Source: Oikopleura dioica
Lineage: Eukaryota > Animalia > Chordata
Direction of reading: 5' to 3'
Assembly: GCA_907165135.1 (NCBI GenBank)
Contig: OU015567.1
Location: 13,454,001-13,518,000 of the forward strand
DNA: 64,000 bases
Shown: positions 23,600 to 63,055 of the stretch, piece by piece
Position numbering within the stretch: position 1 is the first letter of the stretch
Layout of the letters: every line of letters begins with the position of its first letter
The notes under the pieces: generated by a model
Seen by the model: only the letters and a program-made list of their open reading frames with translations
What the model was told of the DNA's origin: nothing
Databases searched by the model: none
Program-made: the position numbers and the translations under genes

Positions 23600-24594
23600 G
23601 CGATGGAGTGGATTTTGAGCGGAGTGGAGCGTGAGCGGAGTGGATCCACTCCACTCCACTCGCTCAGCCTATATTTTTAGTGTCCACTCATTCGCTCCAC
23701 TCCACTCCAACCTGTAAAATCGACTTTGGAGTGGATTTTGAGTGGATTTTGAGCGGATGGAGTGGATTTTTGTCTTTAGCGCCCCTTTTCTCGTATTCTG
23801 ATTGGAGACCGAGTTTTGTCTATTTTTAAATGAAGAATCAAATTCTCTCAGGGGATAATCAAGAGAATAAATCAATGATATAATATCAGGATCAACCTTT
23901 AATTTAGGACCGACTTCTTCATAAAAGTTTGATGATCAGACCCTCTCTAAAACCCTTTTTATCTCGAAAAATGAAAGGCTTGCTCACGGCGTGCAAAGAA
24001 GACTTCGGTTTCTGTCTGCTCGTGGGGGCTCGACCTTTTTCAACCTCTCTTCTTTACGCCCCCTCTTTCTCTTCCTTTCACCCCCCTCTTTCTTAAAACC
24101 CCTTTTTCAGAAAAGGAAAAGCTTGCTCACGGCGTGCAAAGATGACTTCGGTTTCTGTCTGCTCGTGGGGGTCGAACCTTTTTTGTTCCTCTGCTCTCTT
24201 TCAACCTTTTTAATAATTAAACCCTCCCCCCAACGACCAATTATAATGGATTTAAGAATAAAACGACCCTGTTTGTTCCTCAGTACCTCCTGAACTTCAA
24301 GGTTGCTAAGAATATATCTTCCATTAGTCAATGCTTCCGAGAATATAATTGTAAATTGACTAAAAATATGAGAATGAAATCGTTTAAAAAAAAACCCGGC
24401 CTCTCGACCCTTTTTTGAGTGTATTGTACGGTGCATGAAATGCAAAAAATTTTTTTTTAATCGCTCAAACTTCCCTAAAAATCCGCTCAAAATCCACTCC
24501 GCTCACCCACTCCACTCGCTCAACCATTTTTTTTGGGCATCCACTCATCTCTCCACTCCACTCCAAAATTTTTTCGGCCAAAATTGGAACCCTG
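23580..24594. mobile_element. hAT-type MITE, 1015 bp
   Basis: TIR CAGGGTTCCAATTTTG / CAAAATTGGAACCCTG; 8-bp TSD GTTCACAC (23572-79, 24595-602); subterminal CCACT/AGTGG arrays; internal ~65-bp duplication at 23978 and 24121. Confidence 0.93.
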
Positions 24595-32698: not shown

Positions 32699-32831
32699 AT
32701 TGTTCTACCATCAAAATCAGCGCTGGAATTTTTATTCTGTTCTCCACTTATTTATTTTATTTTTGTACTTAATATTTATTTAATAAAACAACTTGCTGAT
32801 CTTCGATAAGATCAGTAAGTTTTGGCTGCTC

Positions 32832-33255
32832 CTATTTTCAGGAGTTCGAAAAATTTGGAGTAAATTTTTTGTAGTCATTTTTCATTTTAATTTCAAAAGT
32901 GGAGATTTTTTTTTCTGGAACTGTTTCTCAAAAAATTTCATTGATTCCATTTGGACCAAAAATAACACCTTGTTCAGACCGATTTTTAAGGGTGTTAGAG
33001 TAATAATTAAGGGTATCTGACTGGGGCAAAATAAAGCTTAGGCCCCGAGCCAGGTTTTTACCGGGGTTTTAGGGGGCCGGGAGGCCCTTAACACCCTTGA
33101 AAATGGGTTTGAACAAGGTGTTATTTTTGGTCCAAATGGAATCGATGAAATTTTTTGAGAAACAGTTCCAGAAAAAAAAATCTCCACTTTTGAAATTAAA
33201 ATGAAAAAATGACTACAAAAATTCTATTCCAAATTTTTCAAACTCCTGAAAATAG
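32832..33255. mobile_element. Foldback (palindromic) MITE-like element, intergenic
   Basis: ~190-bp inverted arms (CTATTTTCAGGAGTT... / ...AACTCCTGAAAATAG). No clear TSD, so the ends are approximate. Confidence 0.7.
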
Positions 33256-33356
33256 TAGTTGCCGTAAGTTTTCTATTTTTATAACCACAGCCTCCTAGGG
33301 CATTTTTAGGAAAACAAAATGCTCTAGAAGCGAATGATTTTGAATAACAGTTAAGT

Positions 33357-36547: not shown

Positions 36548-39483
36548 CTAGCTTGATTTCTCGACAATCTGCTCTGGCGCAGTTGGAGGCCAATCAAGGT
36601 GGACGTTAGTGACATCAAGTCCGACAATGTCACATTCGCATCCGAGAATTTCAGAAACATTTGGCTTCGTTCTTCCGAAATCTCCATGAACAAATTCCTA
36701 GAAAAGAAAGTCATCCACTGACTATGAGCTTTTTCGTACCTTAATATAAGTGCCCGCTTGAGTAAGCAAATCGATATAGAACCAGTTTTCTGATCTACCT
36801 TCCCATCTCTTCCCTTCTGCTCTATAAAGATGAGTTAAAGGAAATAGAGCTGGGCGTCAAATTTACTTATGAATCGTTCTTGGTCTCGTATCATTGTTTC
36901 TCCGATGCAATACTCGGATAGGAGTCTTTTGCTAAATAAAAGATAAGAAGTAGGACAAATATTTCTTTCTACCTTCAATACTACTTCGCTCATTCTTAAT
37001 TTTTCCAAATCTTCCTCTGTAATCTTTCTTTCAGCGTAGCAAAACGCCCGATACTCTTTTTTCTTGTCCACTTCTCCTTCCAAAAGCGTTTTGCATCCAC
37101 TTTTTCCAATAATGCAAACGTCTTTTATTTTTAAGGACCCCCCCGTCAACAATTTTCGAAAAATCTATTTTCGGAATTTCAAAATTTTGACCCCGGAAAT
37201 GGATTCTACAGGTCAAAAAACGATTTTGAGGCTTCATTTTTTGGGGGTCTATCTCGACTCTAACACCCTCAAAATCGCGTTTGGAAATCGGACTTTTTGA
37301 CGAAAAATGACGAAAAAGTCCCAATTTTGCTTAAATTTTAGACTTTTATTGGTCAAAAAGTGCTCCTTACAAGTTTTTATGATAAATTTAACTTCCAGGC
37401 ACACTCAGAAGCCAAAATATGGCTGCTTTGAGATTTTCGATTTTTTGAGGAAAATTGTTGACGGGGGGGTCCTTAAATCGGAGCTTTTATTCACTTCTGC
37501 GGCTAGAATCTCCGCACAACTGCTTGTCAACAGCTTGCGGGGCTTCAACAGCTCCACAATGAAGGGTCTTCCATTTCCTGAAAATAGAATCCAACTCAAC
37601 ATTCAAGCACGAATTAAACTTACCGAGAGTTCTAACATCTACATCTTCTCTCCCTGCCGAAGTCAGGATTCCTCTCTGCGCCCCAGTCGCTTTTACAAAG
37701 GGCGCTGCGATAATTTCCTCGACAGAAGTTTCACTGTAATGTCTTTTGCCATCAACGAGCCAGGGAGTTTGAGGGAGCGTCCTTGAATATTTCTGATATC
37801 TTCCAGCGATGTAGATCGGCGAGTGGATCGTTTCGACTGTCAGTTTGTGCGACGGAGAAAGAGATGAAAGGTACTCGCCGAGACTGAGCAAGTCGGAAGG
37901 CGACAGAATGTTTAAAGTCTGCGAAACAGTACTGGCATTGATCGTTGGCGGCAGATTCGTAACCTCTGGGCTGCACGATTGGCAAAAAAATTTGGATTTT
38001 TCCAACCAACTGCCAATCCAATCCAACCCAAATTTTCCCAATCCAACCAAATTCCAATCCAATTCCAATTCCAATTGGAATTTGGCTGTCCAATTGGAAA
38101 ACTCGTGCCAATTGGAAGCAAGATTCCAATTGCCGATTGGTCCGCGAAAAAAATCGGATTCTAATTGGAAAAATCAGTTTTTTTAATGAGTTCATTTAAA
38201 ATAATCCTTTAAAATTTACAAACGAGGGAATTTTTAAAGCAAATCGGCATCGGGCATTCGGGGAAAAAGCGTTCGGCCGAGCATTCGGAGCTAAGCCCCT
38301 AAAATTTGGCCAGGCAAGAGCGGGCATTTCGGACATTTGGGCAATATGGGCACTTTCGGGCAATTCGGCGCTTTCGGGCAGTTTGGCAAGCCCTCGCCGA
38401 AGAAAATTCCAAAATTTTGCTAATTTTTGCATTCTTTACAACTATTTTTGCCCTCTTGCTCCTCTAACTGAATCAATAGTCCCTCGAAACTTATTTTTCT
38501 AGCCCTTATCTATCGAAAATCCCACCATCAGTCCAATTCTTTTGACTTAAAGATCGAAAATTATTGCCCAACTGGTCGTTTGAGCCACTGTTTCAAGCAT
38601 AATCTGGCATTTCCGCATGGAAAGAGGTGCTTCGATCCAATCATTTTGCCAATTTACCAATTGGCGACCAGTTGCCAATTGGACCCCCATTTTCCAATTG
38701 GAAGGGCTGTCCAATTGGACAGACCCTGATTTTCCCGCCTTTTTTCCAACCAATTTACCAATCCAATCCAATTGGAATTGGAAACCAATTGGATTCCAAT
38801 CCAATTGTGCAGCCCTGCTCTTCTTCTTCCTTTTCTTTCTTCGCTTTTTTGCCCCATTTCTTTTTCTTTCCTCCTCCAGCTCTCGTTTTGTAAATCGCCT
38901 CCAATTTATAGGAAATTTCGTTTGATAAGCTGGGGTTGTTGATCAATCCAGTGATGAATTGAGACTCGAATTCTTCGCATAAGAATTTGGGCGAAACCTT
39001 CAGCTCGCTTTCGGCATTGATGAAGACGTTTTCAAGCAGATTATTGCAGCACATCGTTTTGAGAATTTCTTTCAGGTTGATGTTGTCTTTCAAAGCTTGA
39101 AAAAAGTATGGGAAGGATAATTTCTGGTGTTATTAGCGAGCTTTTCCTGGTAAAACAACATCTGAAACTTCCTGCTTTATCGAATAATAAACAATGTTCT
39201 CGACGAGTGGCATTATCGACGGAACTGTAATCAACATTTGAAAGTCCCTAACGACATGTTCTTTCTCCAGCGGCCAGTTTTCTACCGACTTTCTGATTTC
39301 TTCTTTGTACTCAGCAAACCTCGACCGGGTCAGAAAGCCAAAACACATGATACATGTTCGACTTGGGTCAACGAATTTTCTCAATTTTTCATTTTCAACA
39401 GGAAGATTTTCCACTGTTTCGTAAAATTTCGTGAAATCATTGCAGCCGAGAAGACGATTCGCGCAAACTCCGCAGATATTCAT
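36548..39483 (-). CDS. PUS10: tRNA pseudouridine synthase Pus10; two introns coincide with MITEs
   Basis: IAGRYQKYSRTLPQTPW, SAGREDVDVRTLGNGRPF, QKTPIRVLHRR, TQAGTYIKEFVHGDFGRTKPN, DWPP. Confidence 0.93.
37135..37472. mobile_element. TTAA-specific MITE with GG termini (Kolobok-like), 338 bp, inside the PUS10 coding sequence
   Basis: Perfect 23-bp TIR GGACCCCCCCGTCAACAATTTTC; TTAA on both sides (37131-34, 37473-76). Confidence 0.9.
37969..38814. mobile_element. MITE (~846 bp) with CCAAT-array subterminal repeats, interrupting the PUS10 coding sequence
   Basis: TIR GGCTGCAC(G/A)ATTGG; CTG on both flanks (3-bp TSD, Harbinger-like), or alternatively a hAT-like CAGGG end without TSD. ~200-bp inverted CCAATT/CCAATC arrays and a central GGGCA repeat. 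Confidence 0.85.
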
Positions 39484-39554: not shown

Positions 39555-39862
39555 CGTTTTCCTACTGATGGGGTGTTTGATAGCGAAATTTCCATCAGAG
39601 CGCTGTGACGAATCAGAGTGCCTATCTCAAGAGGGCCTGAGTTAGGCTAGTGAGGCCAGTTACCATACATTTTCTTGGTCGGCGCTCTGATTCGTCAGAT
39701 GTTGGAAAAACGGGTTACGTGAATCTTATGGAAAATTCGAGAAAAATTAAACGGACGAATCAGAGCGCCCGTCAGTGGGATGTCTGGTTACTAGCCTTAC
39801 AAGCCCAACCCAGGCTCCGATGAGATTTTTTCCGCTATCCAACACCCCATCAGTAGCAAACG
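39555..39862. mobile_element. Degenerate foldback element in a divergent promoter region
   Basis: CTACTGATGGGGTGTT / AACACCCCATCAGTAG inverted pair plus inner GCGCTCTGATTCGTC / GACGAATCAGAGCGC. No TSD seen. Confidence 0.55.
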
Positions 39863-40972: not shown

Positions 40973-43741
<2,769 letters not shown>

Positions 43742-45330: not shown

Positions 45331-46439
45331 ATGTCTCAATACCCAATTGTCGGTGATGAAAGCATCATGAGCCAGAAAAAGCACGGCACTTCTGATGCTC
45401 CTGTTCAGAAAGTTAGTAATAAAAATTTGATTCTTTTTAATGAAATTTTTAGGAATTGCGATGGAAATGCAACTATGATACCGCAGATTCCGTTTGCAAC
45501 TTCAATCGCCATTACGCCGAGCATTCTGGTTATTTTCTTGAAACTAGCTTTTTGAACGAGACAAAAGAGGGCACCGAAATAACCTTTTACGATTCAGGTA
45601 GTTTATTTTGAGATATTCTTCAGAGACATTGATTTCAAGTGACTGGAAAGCCTCTTTTCATCGCTCCAAAAGGCAGAACCAAGGTCTCGGATTTGGTGTG
45701 ACCCGCTGTGCGCAAAAATGAGTCCCCTGAAATGGCGCACAAAATGATGTGCGCAGCATTTGCGGATCACAGAAAAGGCTGTGATTCAGTCGAGCACACC
45801 GACAAATTTGCTGTGGCCGATCACAGCTCTCAATCACAGAATTCGTGTGATCCAAAAATAAGGGATGGGAATTCAGGCTTTCATAACGAGGGATTGTTGA
45901 ATCATCTCAAAGGTCGAAGCCGCGTTATCGGACATTCCTATCATCCGCCCCTGGTATGAATAGTTTTCCTAATGAAATTCAGTGATAAATTCATGGGTCG
46001 GGCGAAAGGAATTCTGGATCACAAAAAATCTGTGATCCAAATAAGACTAAATTTCAATTCTGTGATCGAGCATCGATCACAGTTCCTCTGTGATCGAATA
46101 AACCTGCGCACATCTTATTGTGCGCCTTTTCAGGAGACATGTTTTCGTGCACAGCGGATCACACCAAATCCGAGACCTTGGGCAGAACTTGGAAAGAATT
46201 CGTCGACGAAAGCAAGGCGCATGGATGGCCGAGCTTCAGAGACGAAGAAGTCGTCTGGGAAAACGTCAGGACTTTAAAAGATGGCGAAGCGGTTTCTCTT
46301 AGTGAGTGGAATCTTCCTCTTTTCGGGTTTACTGTTATTTATAGCGGGCACTCACTTGGGCCACAATCTGCCAGACAAGAAGGGGAATCGATACTGCATC
46401 AATCTCTGCTCTGTTGCTGGACAACCTAAAGAAACATGA
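45331..46439 (+). CDS. MsrB-like protein, copy 2, interrupted by a MITE
   Basis: Tandem paralogue with the same motifs. The frame is intact on both sides of the insertion (KGRT|WKEF). Confidence 0.65.
45680..46180. mobile_element. hAT-type MITE, 501 bp
   Basis: TIR CAAGGTCTCGGATTTGGTGTGA / TCACACCAAATCCGAGACCTTG; 8-bp TSD GGCAGAAC (45672-79, 46181-88); internal GATCAC/GTGATC repeats. Confidence 0.93.
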
Positions 46440-52380: not shown

Positions 52381-54079
52381 AAATCAACAACTGTGCAAAT
52401 AACTTTTTAACTCTTCATAAATTTCCCGAAAAACTGGAAAATTCTGAAAAGCTGTCACTTTTTGTTTGACTACCCGTGCCAATATTCCGCTCGCCAGCAT
52501 CGTTCTGCAATCTTTCAAGCTTGGGTCAACAAAAGAAAAATGGCGTACTGAAGAGCGAAATTGTATTTGCGCTCAGAACTTTACCAACTGTAAATTTATA
52601 TTTATAACGAAATCGGATAAGAATTTTCAAAAAATTATTAAGAAAGACACACTTGAAATCACTAATTTGATATTTTTAAACTTTAAATTCCTATTAGTCA
52701 TCAACTGTTACTGTAATTCATTACAGTAACGTGAAGGTCTCTTCCGATCGACTCAGCCTTCCGATGACCCTTTTCTACACGAATCTGACTTTTCCAAAGG
52801 AATTACAGTGTATTATGTCCATAGAAATCTTCTGATTTCTTGATGAAAAGACAAAAAGAAAAAGCTGATCGACAAAACCAACAAAAGGAAATGCCAATTC
52901 AATTATCACAAAGACAATCTGATATTCGATTATGTACCGTACAATTATCATAAAAACGAACGCTATTTGCGTACCCCTGCGCGATAATACTTCTTCTCCA
53001 AATTTTCCAATCGATTTCGTTGTTGCTCGTTTAGCTTCTTCATTGCTAGAAATTTCTCATCAAAAACAACTCATCATCAAATAAACACAAAATAAGTGAA
53101 ATTCACAGCATTATTACCTTCATATTTTTGCTTAAAATTTTCATCCTCATCTTTGCCCATTTTTTCTTCTGGTATCTCTTTCACACTTTCTCCAAAAGAT
53201 AACTTTTAAAATTAAAATCTAACGCAGCGGCCAAACACTTGTATTTCTGAAGCGCTTTTGAGCTTCCGAAAATGTCGCTTCCACGCGCCCCAGGGCGATC
53301 CGGATTCTCCCGCACTTATATTTCTTTTTGGAAGAAAAAGTCAATTCACGGACGCAATTCAAAGAATTCTGGATTTGGGCGTTTTTACGCTCTTTTTATG
53401 CTTAATCGTTTCTTGTGTGTAAAACATGGTTGAGCCGCTCCTCACAATTGGGCTGTCATAGAAACCAAATTTCTTTGAATCTGTCAAACAGCACAAATTA
53501 TCATCAAAGATCAAAATAATTACATCAGAAGATAAAACACAAACTAAAATCATTCGGAGAGAGGAAAACTCTAAAATTTCTTGCCGTTTTATGATAATGA
53601 TTGAAAGACCATAACTCGCTCTTGGATAAGATTGGATGGGAATAAATTCTAGTTTGCCTAAGGTGCGTAAGTGCGGTCATCACCCAGTAGGAATTCCAGA
53701 GCGGCTACATGTGCCGTTTTGGCCAATACTGAGCTTAGTGTAAAAAAATTCTTGAGTGTGTAATTGCCCAGTCTTCTGACCAGTGACTGTGTGATAAGGA
53801 CGAGAGGAACAATTTTATTTACAGAAAAGAACGATTATTTATAAAACGCAAATTCGACATCATATCCGACAATACCCGGACACCAGACGCGGCTACGTCG
53901 ACACGTAAGAAGTCGAGCAAGTCCGATTAGAGTCCAAAGAAAGGAAGTCAATTAATCTTCACCTCTTCTCGAGTATCGTCTCTTCTAAAGTCATTTTCAT
54001 TGTAGCCATACATACGGTAACTCGTGAATAGTATTTCTAAAAAATTTGGTTTATAAACTAAGAATAAGGAGCCACTTTC

Positions 54080-54198
54080 GCTTAGCGTCATACCGCGTAG
54101 AATAAACCAGTTCTCGTCCGATCACTGAAGTCAAACTACGACGGGCGGGGTTAGTACTTACATGGGTGACCGGTTGGGAATACCTCGTGCGCTAAGCA
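54080..54198 (+). rRNA. 5S rRNA
   Basis: 119 nt; terminal helix GCTTAGC/GCTAAGC; internal promoter GGTTAGTACTTACATGGGTGACCGGTTGGGAATACC matches 5S; followed by a T-run terminator. Confidence 0.92.
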
Positions 54199-54278
54199 TT
54201 TTGACTTTTTTGGAAATGTCAAAGCTTTTTTCATATTATCGTAAACTTGTTTAACTTTGATGATTTTATGACTGCCAT

Positions 54279-54353
54279 CAGGGATGTACATTCGCAAAAA
54301 TTCCCGCATTTTGCGCTGTTTTGCGGATTTTGCGCTGCGAATGTACATCACTG
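54279..54353. mobile_element. Miniature hAT-type MITE, 75 bp
   Basis: TIR CAG(G/T)GATGTACATTCGCA; 8-bp TSD ACTGCCAT. Absent from the mirror arm. Confidence 0.9.
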
Positions 54354-54554
54354 ACTGCCATCATAGTGAACAGTTTGATTCTGCAATAAAGTCTTTTTGG
54401 TATCTTATGTATCATAAGTTATGATTCTAATCTGTGTAGGGCAGCATAGTGGGAGAAGCATTTAGCGCCATCTAGCGCATATTCTTCTCAGAGAGATCAA
54501 AATTAGGAACGCGCAGCGACAAAACGACCTCGAAATCAGGCACCTCGGGTCTTC

Positions 54555-54645
54555 ACTCATCCCATTTTTGAGTCCGATTTCGATTGTCTAACAGGTAAGA
54601 ATCGAATCCACGCCTCCTTCTCTCCCATCCCTCTCGCCTCTCACA
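54555..54645 (+). ncRNA. Spliced-leader (SL) RNA gene; 40-nt exon 54555-54594, donor GTAAGA; 3' end approximate
   Basis: Exon sequence matches the O. dioica SL as I recall it, followed by a strong 5' splice site and located downstream of 5S. Confidence 0.9.
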
Positions 54646-54962
54646 AATAACTTGATTCATTCAACGTAAAAGTGAATTCACTTTTCTGCTGAATCGTATG
54701 AGTCCCACTTCCGATTCCTAATCGTCGGCCTCTAAACGGAAGAATTTGGCCGCATCTCAATCGCGAATTAGTACTTCTCGGTCAAGTACATAATGTAGCA
54801 ATTTGCTAGTCTTGAAAACACGTGTTAAAAGACTCACCACGGTAGATGCGGTATAAGAGGGATGTCGAGATAATCGCCACTTAGTACGCATTATGTGAAA
54901 TCAAACGTCTTTTAACACGTGTTTTCAAGACTAGCAATGTACTTGACCGAGAAGTACTAATT

Positions 54963-55204
54963 CGGGGAAACGCTCGGTTCGTGTACCAATTGGTATTCGA
55001 ATACCAAATCTTCTCAAAAATTCAAAATTTGGTGCACTAAAAGAGAGCCTATGCGCTTCGCGCCTGTCTTGAAGGAGACTTTGGTAGTGATTTAGTAGCA
55101 ATTTCACGGAAAGAGACCTTTCTGATCAAAAACCTTGGATTTGGAAAATCAAAAATTGGTATTCGAATACCAAAAAATTTTGGTACACGAATCGAGCGTC
55201 CCCG
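54963..55204. mobile_element. 242-bp MITE-like insertion that breaks the palindrome symmetry
   Basis: Imperfect TIR CGGGGA..ACGCTCG.TTCGTGTACC; flanked by CTAATT direct repeats; internal palindrome TTGGTATTCGAATACCAA occurs twice. Confidence 0.75.
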
Positions 55205-55329
55205 CTAATTCGCGATTGAGATGCGGCCAAATTCTTCCGTTTAGAGGCCGACGATTAGAAATCGGAAGTGGGACTCATACGATTCAGCAGAAAAGTGAAT
55301 TCACTTTTACGTTGAATTAATCAAGTTAT

Positions 55330-55421
55330 TTGTGAGAGGCGAGAGGGATGGGAGAGAAGGAGGCGTGGATTCGATTCTTACCTGTTAGACAATCGAAATC
55401 GGACTCAAAAATGGGATGAGT
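55330..55421 (-). ncRNA. SL RNA gene, second copy (exon 55421-55382)
   Basis: Reverse complement of the first copy. Confidence 0.9.
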
Positions 55422-55676
55422 GAAGACCCGAGGTGCCTGATTTCGAGGTCGTTTTGTCGCTGCGCGTTCCTAATTTTGATCTCTCTGAGAACAATATGCG
55501 CTAGATGGCGCTAAATGCTTCTCCCACTATGCTGCCCTACACAGATTAGAATCATAAGATAACAAAAGACTTTATTGCAGAATCAAACTGTTCACTATGA
55601 TGGCAGTCATAAATCATCAAAGTTAAACGAGTTTACGATAAAATGAAAAAGCTTTGACATTTCCAAAATGTCAAAA

Positions 55677-55795
55677 TGCTTAGCGCACGAGGTATTCCCA
55701 ACCGGTCACCCATGTAAGTACTAACCCCGCCCGTCGTAGTTTGACTTCAGTGATCGGACGAGAACTGGTTTATTCTACGCGGTATGACGCTAAGC
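55677..55795 (-). rRNA. 5S rRNA, second copy
   Basis: Reverse complement appears identical to 54080-54198. Confidence 0.92.
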
Positions 55796-57610
55796 GAAAG
55801 TGGCTCCTTATTCTTAGTTTATAAACCAAATTTTTAGAAATACTATTCACGAGTTACCGTATGTATCGCAAATAAGATCGTCTGATAGTGCCTACCAAAT
55901 GAAAATGACTTTAAAAGAGACGATACTCGAGAAGAGGTGAAGATTAATTGACTTCCTTTCTTTGAACTCTAATCGGACTTGCTCGACTTCTTACGTGTCG
56001 ACTGAAGAGCCGCATCTGTTGTCCGGTATTGTCGGATGTAATAGCCATTTTGCATTTCGTAAAGATTCGTTTTATTTTAATGAAAAAGATGTTCCTTAAA
56101 ATACAGTAGTTACTGTATTTCGCGTTCTCTTCTTGAACTTGACATCTTGCAAAATGCTAACTAACTCAATAACCAGTATAATAACTCGCAATCCAGACAG
56201 CTCGACGATTCCAATTGCCTAGATACAGTCGCACTTACAGTACAAAAAAACGAATAGAGAGAACTTTCTTTGAAAGTTGAATCGAGTATATTGGTGATAT
56301 CACGCGATTTGACTCAGTGAGCGTGTTCTTTTCTCAGATTTAGTCCTGCATAATGTCGGTTGAATTAAAAGGTAAGTTTATTCATTATAGTTCTCTCTTT
56401 ATTCATTATCTTTTTATTCAAATTTTGAAAGAGAAAGCTGAAGAGCATCCAGAGTCAGAGAAATTTATTCACTCACTGATTTACATAATTTTTATGAAGA
56501 GATTTTGAACGACTAGCGAGACTCTTGATAATAATAAGTATTTCACATAATAAACAATAAAAATCTCATTCTGAGTCCCGTAACAATGATACTCCTTTTG
56601 GTAAGTTAAAAGCGGCCGGTAACATTTACCAGCGACTTGTTTTATCGTAGATTCTTGGGCTGGCGTTCTCCAACTTTATTTACAAGCGAAATTTGCGAAA
56701 AGAAATGAAACCTACTATTACTTTGATTCAGTAAAAAATATCAACAATTGTCATAAATTATTCAAATATTTCATTCTAACAATTTTTTCAGTGTCGAGTC
56801 GACACTGTTGACCTTTTTTGTCCTGAATTTGGAAATAATGTTTTTTTGGAAGGTCTTTGTTACCTAAAATTCTGAGGGAATAGGACTGTCATGTAATAAA
56901 TAAGAGAGCCATACATTCTTTGATTTTGATTTTAATTAAATGCAAGCGTAAGCACTGTAACAGTCGTCGAGTGAATCTGTAGCAGTAGGGGAAACTAGTG
57001 TGAGTTGACAATCTCATTACGCGTCAACAAAATCACTAGTCTTCCATTCCGTCTACAAGATATTTGCAAGTCCTCGATCTCTCTATCCCTGTTTCACTGT
57101 ATGATCCGCTTTCCGGTCAAAGGCGCCTAATTATGGTGTCTCTCAAAAAAGCGATGCCGTAGTTCTCGAGAAAATGCCTGGATCGAAAGTGAAAGTGTCG
57201 CTCAAACCGGGGCCGGAGCGTCTCTGGCTCTCAAGAATGCTTTGGCTAATTCATCCCAAATGCTCATGAATAATTGACTGTTGCGATTCCCCTCGACAGT
57301 AGCGCCTTTAACATGCTTCTAGCTGGCGCTAGAATCGAGAAAAATCAATTAAAGCAGCACCTGCAAGTGAGAAAGAGTGATTCGACACTTCCTTGAGTGA
57401 TTAAAATTGATTCGAGCAGGAAAGGGTCAAATATTCATTCACAACAAAAGCACCGCTCGGTCGATACTCCCAGTTCAAAGCATGAATAAAACAGATACCT
57501 CCAAAATGATCGACCCATCGAACAACAGAAACGAAAAGAACTGATCTTGGATATTTGGATATTTATTATTTACAATTTGTTCAAAATCGTCTTTTCTTTT
57601 CGAACGATTT

Positions 57611-61510: not shown

Positions 61511-63055
61511 TTAGTTTTTGTTTTCAACAAGGGGCTGTCGGTTTTCAGCTTCGTTGTCCAACTTCATCTTTTTAACGCCAGTGGACCCGAAGCCAGCTTC
61601 GCCGCGGACGGTCTCTTCAAGCTTTTCGCTAGACTCGACGAGAACTGGCATCCAGATGCGTTCCAGAATGAATTGAGCGATTCGGTCGCCTTTTTCGACC
61701 TATCCGTAGGGGAAATCACTAATAATTAAGCTTTTTTTTTCTGGCTTAGAAGGGTGAGGTTATAATACAGATTTAGAATCCCCAGAAGCTGGGGATCATT
61801 TTGACTATTGATAGTGGGGGGTCAACTCGTACCCTGAGGGCATTTAGGCACCTCTGAAGTCCCAAAATCCGGCCAACTTCGGAAATTGGAATTTTTGAAC
61901 GCCCAGACCGCCCCTTTAGAGCCAGCGACTGTACTAGAATTGTAGCCCAGGCTCTGACGGTCATTTTGAGATATAGAAAAGTACTGAGACCCGGGGGTTC
62001 CTGAGGAGCTAGAGGCTCTTGAAGTTCGGGAACTCGACAAAAATTGAGTACTTTTTCACAAAAAGTACACCATTTGTGTCACAAATGCCTCCAAAAGACT
62101 CTTTATTTATGTTTCTTCATTAAAAAATGTTAAAGGAATCACTTGGGGTCATCCGAGGTCAGATCGGGTCACTCATGACAGTTTTCCAAATTTTTCATAA
62201 TTTCTGACCTAGAGTGACCTCGGATGACCCCAAATGATTCCTTTAACATTTTTTAATGAAGAAACATAGATAAAGAGTCTTTTGGAGGCATTTGTGACAC
62301 AAATGGTGTACTTTTTGTGAAAAAGTACTCAATTTTTGTCGAGTTCCCGAACTTCAAGAGCCTCTAGCTCCTCAGGAACCCCCGGGTCTCAGTACTTTTC
62401 TATATCTCAAAATGACCGTCAGAGCCTGGGCTACAATTCTAGTACAGTCGCTGGCTCTAAAGGGGCGGTCTGGGCGTTCAAAAATTCCAATTTCCGAAGT
62501 TGGCCGGATTTTGGGACTTCAGAGGTGCCTAAATGCCCTCAGGGTACGAGTTGACCCCCCACTATCAATAGTCAAAATGATCCCCAGCTTCTGGGGATTC
62601 TAAATCTGTATTATAACCTCACCCTTCTAAGCCAGAAAAAAAGCTTAATTATTAGTGATTTCCCCTACCTATCCGACGGTAAAAGAAGCTGCTCGGGTTA
62701 GTGAAATTTACCTTGAATTCCTCTTCGCCAAAGTTGAAGAGAATGACGCCAACGTTTCCTCGATAGTCCTGGTCAACGACACCTGCGCCTACATCAATGC
62801 CTTTCTTGTAAGCAAGGCCCGATCGTGGGGCGATTCGGCCGTAGCAACCATCGGGAAGCGCAACCTTAAAATTGTTACAAATTTGAAGAAAAATCCAATT
62901 CGTACCTGAATATCGGTCTTGATCAGAGCTCGACCCTTGGCAGGAACAATCTTCTCCTCGGCAGAGTAGAGATCCAGTCCAGCGGCGTAATCAGATCCCC
63001 GAGAAGGAGTAGTGGCGTTTTCGGAGAGCTTGTGGAATTTCATTTCAATCGACAT
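61511..63055 (-). CDS. DUT: dUTP diphosphatase (3 exons)
   Basis: [52 protein letters not shown] (motifs 1-5). Confidence 0.96.
61707..62667. mobile_element. Palindromic hAT-type MITE, 961 bp, at the dUTPase intron-2 acceptor
   Basis: ~455-bp near-perfect inverted arms starting TAGGGGAAATCAC; 8-bp TSD CCTATCCG (61699-706, 62668-675). Confidence 0.95.

Follow-up and report, generated by a model that had tools for sequence, protein, structure and literature searches.

The DNA analysed here, a 64-kb stretch of the Oikopleura dioica genome that is referred to below as the window, carries on its minus strand a gene for dUTPase, located on chr2 of the OKI2018_I69 assembly and represented by the public model g7792. 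The gene spans 1,545 nt and is made of three exons encoding 163 amino acids. Exon 1 (62906-63055, with the ATG at 63055) is followed by a 41-nt GT..AG intron (62865-62905), which is spliced at the same position in Bergen-type transcripts, and by exon 2 (62712-62864), which ends in TTC AAG. Exon 3 (61511-61699, stop codon included) opens with GTC GAA AAA GGC (VEKGDRIAQ...). To produce dUTPase from this allele, the 1,012 nt between exons 2 and 3 (62711-61700) must be removed, and this stretch is divided into two complete GT-AG units, which meet directly with zero exon between them. Unit A is the original intron 2 (62669-62711, 43 nt), with its donor D1 (GTAAAT), a CTAAC motif at 62701-62697 and its acceptor A1 (AG at 62670-62669). 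Unit B (61700-62668, 969 nt) is a candidate intron, defined from sequence only, that would run from the donor D2 (GTAGGG, 62668-62663) to the acceptor A2 (AG at 61701-61700) and is formed by a palindromic, non-autonomous hAT-type MITE of 961 bp (61707-62667) plus one copy of its target-site duplication (TSD). The same 961-bp element is present, with 100% identity, in the public contig OU015567.1 (GCA_907165135.1).

Joining the three exons yields a 163-residue protein that is 100% identical to Oidioi.mRNA.OKI2018_I69.chr2.g7792.t1 (P0001). Once 62711-61700 is removed, the product contains a complete single dUTPase domain with the conserved motifs (Pfam PF00692, E = 1.8e-41, profile positions 2-129 of 129), and the O. 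dioica enzyme shares 65-73% identity with animal dUTPases. The dUTPase gene is essential in other organisms. The OKI2018_I69 assembly is Nanopore-based and derives from one male with a heterozygosity of about 3.6%, its annotation was made by AUGUSTUS with RNA-seq hints from laboratory culture RNA, and the median intron length in this genome is 49 bp (PMC8008620).

The dUTPase gene (63055-61511) lies head to tail with a prefoldin-like gene (63751-63272, also on the minus strand), with about 215 bp between them, and intron-less ORFs for both proteins share one Bergen-type RNA or metatranscriptome contig (for example L003, at 31-429 and 586-1077). This arrangement fits an operon whose polycistronic precursor is captured in the assembled contigs. 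In addition, two dUTPases from a marine transcript catalogue that belong to related Oikopleura lineages (P0128 and P0003) start with ..THPIFESDFDCLT.., which corresponds to a translated spliced leader and is direct evidence that the dUTPase mRNA is trans-spliced to the spliced leader (SL) in those lineages. Elsewhere in the window there are two exact copies, with 0 mismatches, of the 40-nt O. dioica spliced leader. They lie in opposite orientations (54555-54594 on the plus strand, 55382-55421 on the minus strand) within a near-perfect palindrome (54040-55835) whose arms measure 353 nt (99%) and 176 nt (98%), a candidate 5S-SL/SL-5S arrangement.

The inserted element and its two alleles

The MITE has two arms of 428 nt (61734-62161 and 62215-62642) that are 100% complementary and enclose a loop of 53 nt (62162-62214), an inverted repeat that is far beyond chance. 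Its outer termini, 32 nt each, are kept apart from the arms by a run of T that differs in length (T7/T9). Within the window, a 25-nt terminal sequence is confined to the element's own two ends, one copy inverted relative to the other. The hAT signature is the combination of an 8-bp TSD and a YARNG-type terminus. Here the element begins with TAGGGG and ends with CCCCTA, so that its termini (TAGGG../..CCCTA) are of the YARNG type; it is flanked by an 8-bp TSD, CGGATAGG, and is short, non-coding and multi-copy, as is characteristic of hAT-type MITEs. It holds no meaningful ORF, merely mirrored chance frames of 63-72 codons. The multi-copy nature of the family follows from the DNA run X25, in which the element is covered at about 3-100 times the depth of its single-copy flanks, with loose ends that run into other flanks. 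No other copy was found in the 64-kb window or in the dUTPase loci compared, nor did exact scans of JGI metagenome contigs with a 20-nt terminus and an internal 22-mer reveal any. Searching the element against Rfam returned just sub-threshold miRNA and sRNA matches at the hairpin loop, well under the gathering scores, and a miRNA or sRNA identity for the loop was rejected because these are generic hairpin matches.

The sequence-only reading from which this work started had proposed that a MITE was inserted at the 3' splice site of the dUTPase gene, duplicating its acceptor. Its coordinates and its sense-strand reading proved correct on the minus strand throughout, including the 961-bp palindrome, and the element turned out to be a true insertion, since an empty allele is present in X25 and both the Bergen genome and a wild metagenome contig lack it. 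The two alleles can be followed in the X25 contigs. One of them (depth 45, 0 differences from the window) runs from exon 3 into the element across the filled junction (61586-61735), while in another (depth 88.8), which carries about 6% SNPs, 61697 is followed directly by 62667 and exactly 969 bp are missing, a precise empty site. Exonic SNPs between the two haplotypes include 61616, 61629, 61631, 61661, 61664, 61667, 62814, 62820 and 62829. The duplication of the acceptor stands, although the duplicated segment is of 8 bp and not of 7 bp as had been read: the empty allele is short by 969 = 961 + 8, and the 9-bp identity visible at the flanks is the 8-bp TSD plus one coincidental T. Window-identical contigs have depths of 39-52 and those of the other haplotype of 89-108, giving a filled-to-empty relation of roughly 1:2, so that the filled allele makes up about one third of a sample that looks like a pool and may or may not be independent of the assembly source. 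The MITE insertion is a young, segregating polymorphism in Okinawan O. dioica, not a fixed or conserved device. It is this polymorphism, with filled and empty alleles in one DNA run, that is new; being polymorphic, at about one third of the depth, the filled allele may or may not function when homozygous.

The Bergen reference genome lacks the MITE and has a 45-nt intron at the same K|V position, spliced in the transcript contig L003, and the wild metagenome contig (L018, 87% identical to the Okinawan sequence) also lacks the element while keeping the intron at that position. All three lineages (Okinawan, Bergen and that of the wild contig) share an intron of 43-45 nt in phase 0 at this K|V position, and the K|V junction is shown at the RNA level by Bergen-type transcript contigs.

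Because the assembly is Nanopore-based (PMC8008620), the palindrome might in principle have arisen during assembly, for instance by an inverted duplication from long reads, and would then be no real insertion. Short-read contigs specific to this copy do not span the loop, and loop position 62187, a C in the assembly, is a T in all nine X25 contigs that cover it, which points either to a base peculiar to this copy or to a polishing error in a palindrome present in many copies; the interior of the dUTPase copy is read from the long-read assembly alone. However, the short-read contig that enters the element from exon 3 without a difference, the clean termini, the 8-bp TSD, the empty allele differing by exactly the element plus the TSD, and the reads, which show the family to be both multi-copy and palindromic, all speak against such an origin, which is very improbable.

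Small palindromic elements are unusually abundant in the window. Six further MITE-like inverted-repeat pairs were observed (32817-33270, 45679-46181, 39558-39860, 37130-37477, 38045-38795 and 23616-24505), and none of the six shares its termini with the dUTPase element. A second hAT MITE of 813 bp occupies 42784-43596 (42776-43604 with its TSDs); it has the termini CAGAGTTCGAAATTTCCCGCG (CAGAG..) and an 8-bp TSD, CCTTGGTA, and lies in the coding path of a putative GDH gene on the minus strand, 7 nt upstream of the donor of an old 49-nt intron. Excision of this element as a GC..AG intron would leave a 7-nt exon, GTCGAAA. If the putative GDH gene is expressed, the MITE and its TSD would be removed as an intron of their own beside the old one, with a 7-nt exon in place of the 0-nt exon of the dUTPase gene. 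By analogy, this second case in the same window would lend support to reading the dUTPase intervening sequence as two units.

Splice sites and the predicted hairpin

The two copies of the TSD lie at 62675-62668 and 61706-61699. The left copy contains the AG of A1 followed by the G that would serve as +1 of D2, and the right copy contains the AG of A2 followed by the first base of exon 3. The duplication copies AG|G and the insertion yields the sequence AG|GTAGGG (62670-62663); A1 and A2 are identical across 7 nt. At the sequence level, removal of the element together with one TSD copy would be free of scars, and the public protein equals this scar-free product. The sequence-only reading was also right in that unit B (62668-61700, 969 nt) equals the element plus the TSD and in that the joining of exon 2 to the proximal acceptor rebuilds a donor, AAG|GTAGGG, of the GTAGG type. 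Indeed, a donor of this type, GTAGGA, is naturally spliced in intron 1 of the Bergen orthologue. Exon 3 starts with a valine codon, GTN, in every lineage compared, so the AG|GT is native to the junction, and the contribution of the MITE is T-AGGGG, which converts a weak GTCGAA to GTAGGG. With A at -2, G at -1, GT at +1/+2, A at +3 and G at +5, D2 has the context of a respectable, canonical donor.

As for the acceptor, two AGs occur inside the 43-nt intron (intron positions 19-20 and 22-23, within 62693-62689 of the window), 5-9 nt past the CTAAC. The normal allele has to pass over both of them, in agreement with CTAAC being the branch site and A1 the first AG that lies far enough from it to be used. 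A1, the first usable AG after CTAAC, is transcribed about 970 nt before A2.

When the dUTPase gene is transcribed, its pre-mRNA would contain some 455 bp of nearly perfect double-stranded RNA (61707-62667), a potential substrate for dsRNA-processing or editing enzymes. The pre-mRNA is predicted to fold as a single hairpin with a minimum free energy of about -917 kcal/mol, whose outermost pair joins G62668, the +1 of D2, with C61706. The predicted duplex takes in D2 and whatever precedes position -6 of A2, its pyrimidine tract and any local branch site included, while D1, the CTAAC at 62701-62697 and both AGs remain outside the stem. Forced opening costs +16 kcal/mol for D2 and about +46 kcal/mol for D2 together with the 30 nt before A2, accessibility being judged here from the minimum free energy and constraint energies alone, and the terminal 30 bp of the stem are AU-rich. 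It had been suggested that the stem of about 455 bp would place the new donor beside the distal acceptor. The stem is indeed predicted to join the two, but it does more than set them side by side: it pairs them, burying D2 and the pyrimidine tract of A2. The pairing of D2 and of the region upstream of A2 implies that the factors acting on unit B would have to bind before the 3' arm is transcribed, or that helicases would have to open the terminal 30 bp. At equilibrium, the modelled hairpin would count against a two-step removal.

Possible routes of intron removal

Four outcomes would be possible: removal of unit A and then of unit B, which is the recursive route; removal of unit B and then of unit A; the joining of D1 to A2 in one step; and removal of unit A alone, giving a truncated product. 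Stopping after the first step leads, as had been predicted, to a protein that reads ...FKVGEITNN and then meets a stop codon, 8 codons past the proximal junction. The other three routes all give the same mRNA, and this has two consequences, namely that there is no obligatory ratchet and that the public gene model cannot separate the routes. The RNA-seq-hinted model g7792.t1 equals the fully spliced 163-residue product, and it may rest on empty-allele reads from the laboratory culture. Public transcripts were of the following kinds. RNA runs X4-X6 (oligo-dT, with the same species label but probably from another cryptic lineage) gave 0 reads on the locus at a likeness of at least 92%. The indexed collections contain no transcript contig that encodes the exact protein, which is recorded solely in the genome assembly, and the transcript contigs that were found (L003-L013) all belong to the Bergen-type lineage and lack the MITE. 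Splice-site weight matrices trained on the window itself (by ORF joining, EM and codon log-odds) produced no length peak and no recognisable consensus.

The reading that we tentatively prefer, at somewhat less than an even chance, is that units A and B would be removed by separate splicing reactions, usually with A first. It can be put together as follows. The MITE landed exactly on the acceptor of intron 2, its TSD CGGATAGG copying AG|G, and each unit would then be spliced with its own signals, in an order set by kinetics. Unit A would usually go first, as it is transcribed about 970 nt earlier and as organisms with short introns tend to pair the nearest sites; with a median intron of 49 bp, the pairing of D1 with A1 is favoured. 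This order would formally be recursive splicing with a zero-nucleotide exon, while the reverse order would lead to the same mRNA. Since the finished hairpin is predicted to bury D2 and the pyrimidine tract of A2, U1 would have to engage D2 ahead of the synthesis of the 3' arm. The stronger claim, that the insertion on AG|G newly created a working recursive splice site at which the 43-nt intron is removed first and the GTAGGG donor is then joined to a duplicated acceptor held by the hairpin, is possible, although we regard it with doubt. If true, it would place a recursive site in a segregating allele: a ratchet point born by transposition, with the empty allele still around.

Another explanation would be that the insertion merely extended intron 2 to 1,012 nt, which would be removed in one step with the original D1 and branch site. 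The 455-bp hairpin would fold the insert away, leaving A2 just 6 nt beyond the base of the stem, and it would crowd A1, whose +1 base forms the first stem pair. In yeast introns, a hairpin between the branch point and the 3' splice site shortens the effective distance between them, while in mammalian introns scanning passes over stems. The accessibility described above speaks for this explanation, as the elements needed for the D1-A2 reaction all lie outside the predicted stem and no duplex would have to be opened, in contrast to those of unit B; the public model is also drawn as a single intron, although necessarily so. However, A1 is single-stranded, matches A2 across 7 nt and is the first usable AG that follows the branch site. 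It is favoured both by the scanning model and by the pairing of nearest sites in a genome with 49-bp introns (PMC8008620), and if short introns are spliced before some 970 nt more are transcribed, A2 would not yet exist at the time of the reaction. One-step removal is considered unlikely.

Alternatively, A1 might be used while the 969-nt unit is poorly removed, so that the filled allele would be a hypomorph or a null that yields mostly the truncated product and is kept as a recessive in the laboratory or wild population. The early stop codon would agree with this, as would the polymorphism itself, with the empty allele in the majority, and the cost of +16 to +46 kcal/mol for undoing the sequestration of D2 and of the region upstream of A2; the perfect arms, moreover, suggest a very recent event on which selection has yet to act. 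Against it, a frequency of about 0.3 is more than one would expect of a recessive lethal, the gene being essential elsewhere, D2 is a good canonical donor, and a second hAT MITE sits in the coding path of the putative GDH gene in the same window. All in all, a defective allele appears rather doubtful.

Relation to known systems and meaning for Oikopleura

Ratchet points with zero-nucleotide exons were described in Drosophila Ubx and at about 200 other sites (10.1101/006163; PMC8605326). As in these, a 3' splice site of the dUTPase gene runs directly into a 5' splice site, as AG|GT and without an intervening exon, and splicing to the AG would regenerate a donor. However, known ratchet points are conserved and divide very long introns, whereas the site described here has a first segment of 43 nt, was made by a transposon and is polymorphic. 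It therefore resembles the class in its juxtaposed sites, but it neither subdivides a long intron nor is conserved, and stepwise removal, if it occurs, is not obligatory.

A second parallel is offered by introners, DNA transposons that make introns by turning the TSD into a splice site (Huff et al. 2016, cited in PMC13326754; surveyed in PMC9860276). Like them, the dUTPase element is non-autonomous, has terminal inverted repeats and a TSD, and would provide a donor from its own end (G|TAGGGG) and an acceptor (..AG|) in the duplicated target. Unlike them, it hit an existing acceptor and created no new intron position.

Stwintrons, including the internally symmetrical ones of the Hypoxylaceae (PMC8469720, PMC12403724), are also complex intervening sequences for which two consecutive U2 reactions are needed or, in the present case, allowed, and in both cases inverted repeats can make the intron double-stranded. 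In a stwintron, however, the internal intron breaks a signal of the external one and the order of removal is obligatory, whereas the dUTPase units are intact and just abut. Furthermore, the studies on stwintrons exclude DNA transposition, their inserts being without flanking duplications (PMC8469720, PMC12403724), in contrast to the MITE, with its TSD and its empty site. The status of a stwintron was consequently rejected for the dUTPase intervening sequence because no splicing signal is interrupted: the context of A1 is intact, D2 and A2 are complete, and the acceptor was duplicated, not split.

A further parallel comes from maize. Wessler and colleagues reportedly described, in the late 1980s, Ds and dSpm insertion alleles from whose pre-mRNA the element is spliced. 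There, as would be the case here, a hAT-family element is removed as or within an intron via terminal sites, and the allele remains partly or fully functional. The maize alleles are said to use mostly cryptic sites, with small changes in the mRNA, whereas the TSD of the dUTPase MITE permits a scar-free removal. In the larvacean itself, transposon insertion as a source of Oikopleura introns was already published (a table in PMC3443670; reviewed in PMC4122922), and work of 2019 in Current Biology that ties MITEs to non-canonical introns concerns Fritillaria borealis, according to PMC13326754.

Transposon-made introns and recursive splice sites are thus both known, and the early behaviour of a new site is usually inferred long afterwards. 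At the dUTPase locus, a filled and an empty allele whose flanks differ by about 6% in SNPs are available in a chordate that has tiny introns and can be cultured. Such a pair makes it possible to read whether a fresh MITE on an acceptor does no harm, which of the two units is removed before the other, and whether a long hairpin helps or hinders their removal. If the filled allele is cleanly spliced, it would be a further concrete case of O. dioica tolerating MITE insertions in its genes; if it is poorly spliced, it would be a natural dUTPase hypomorph.
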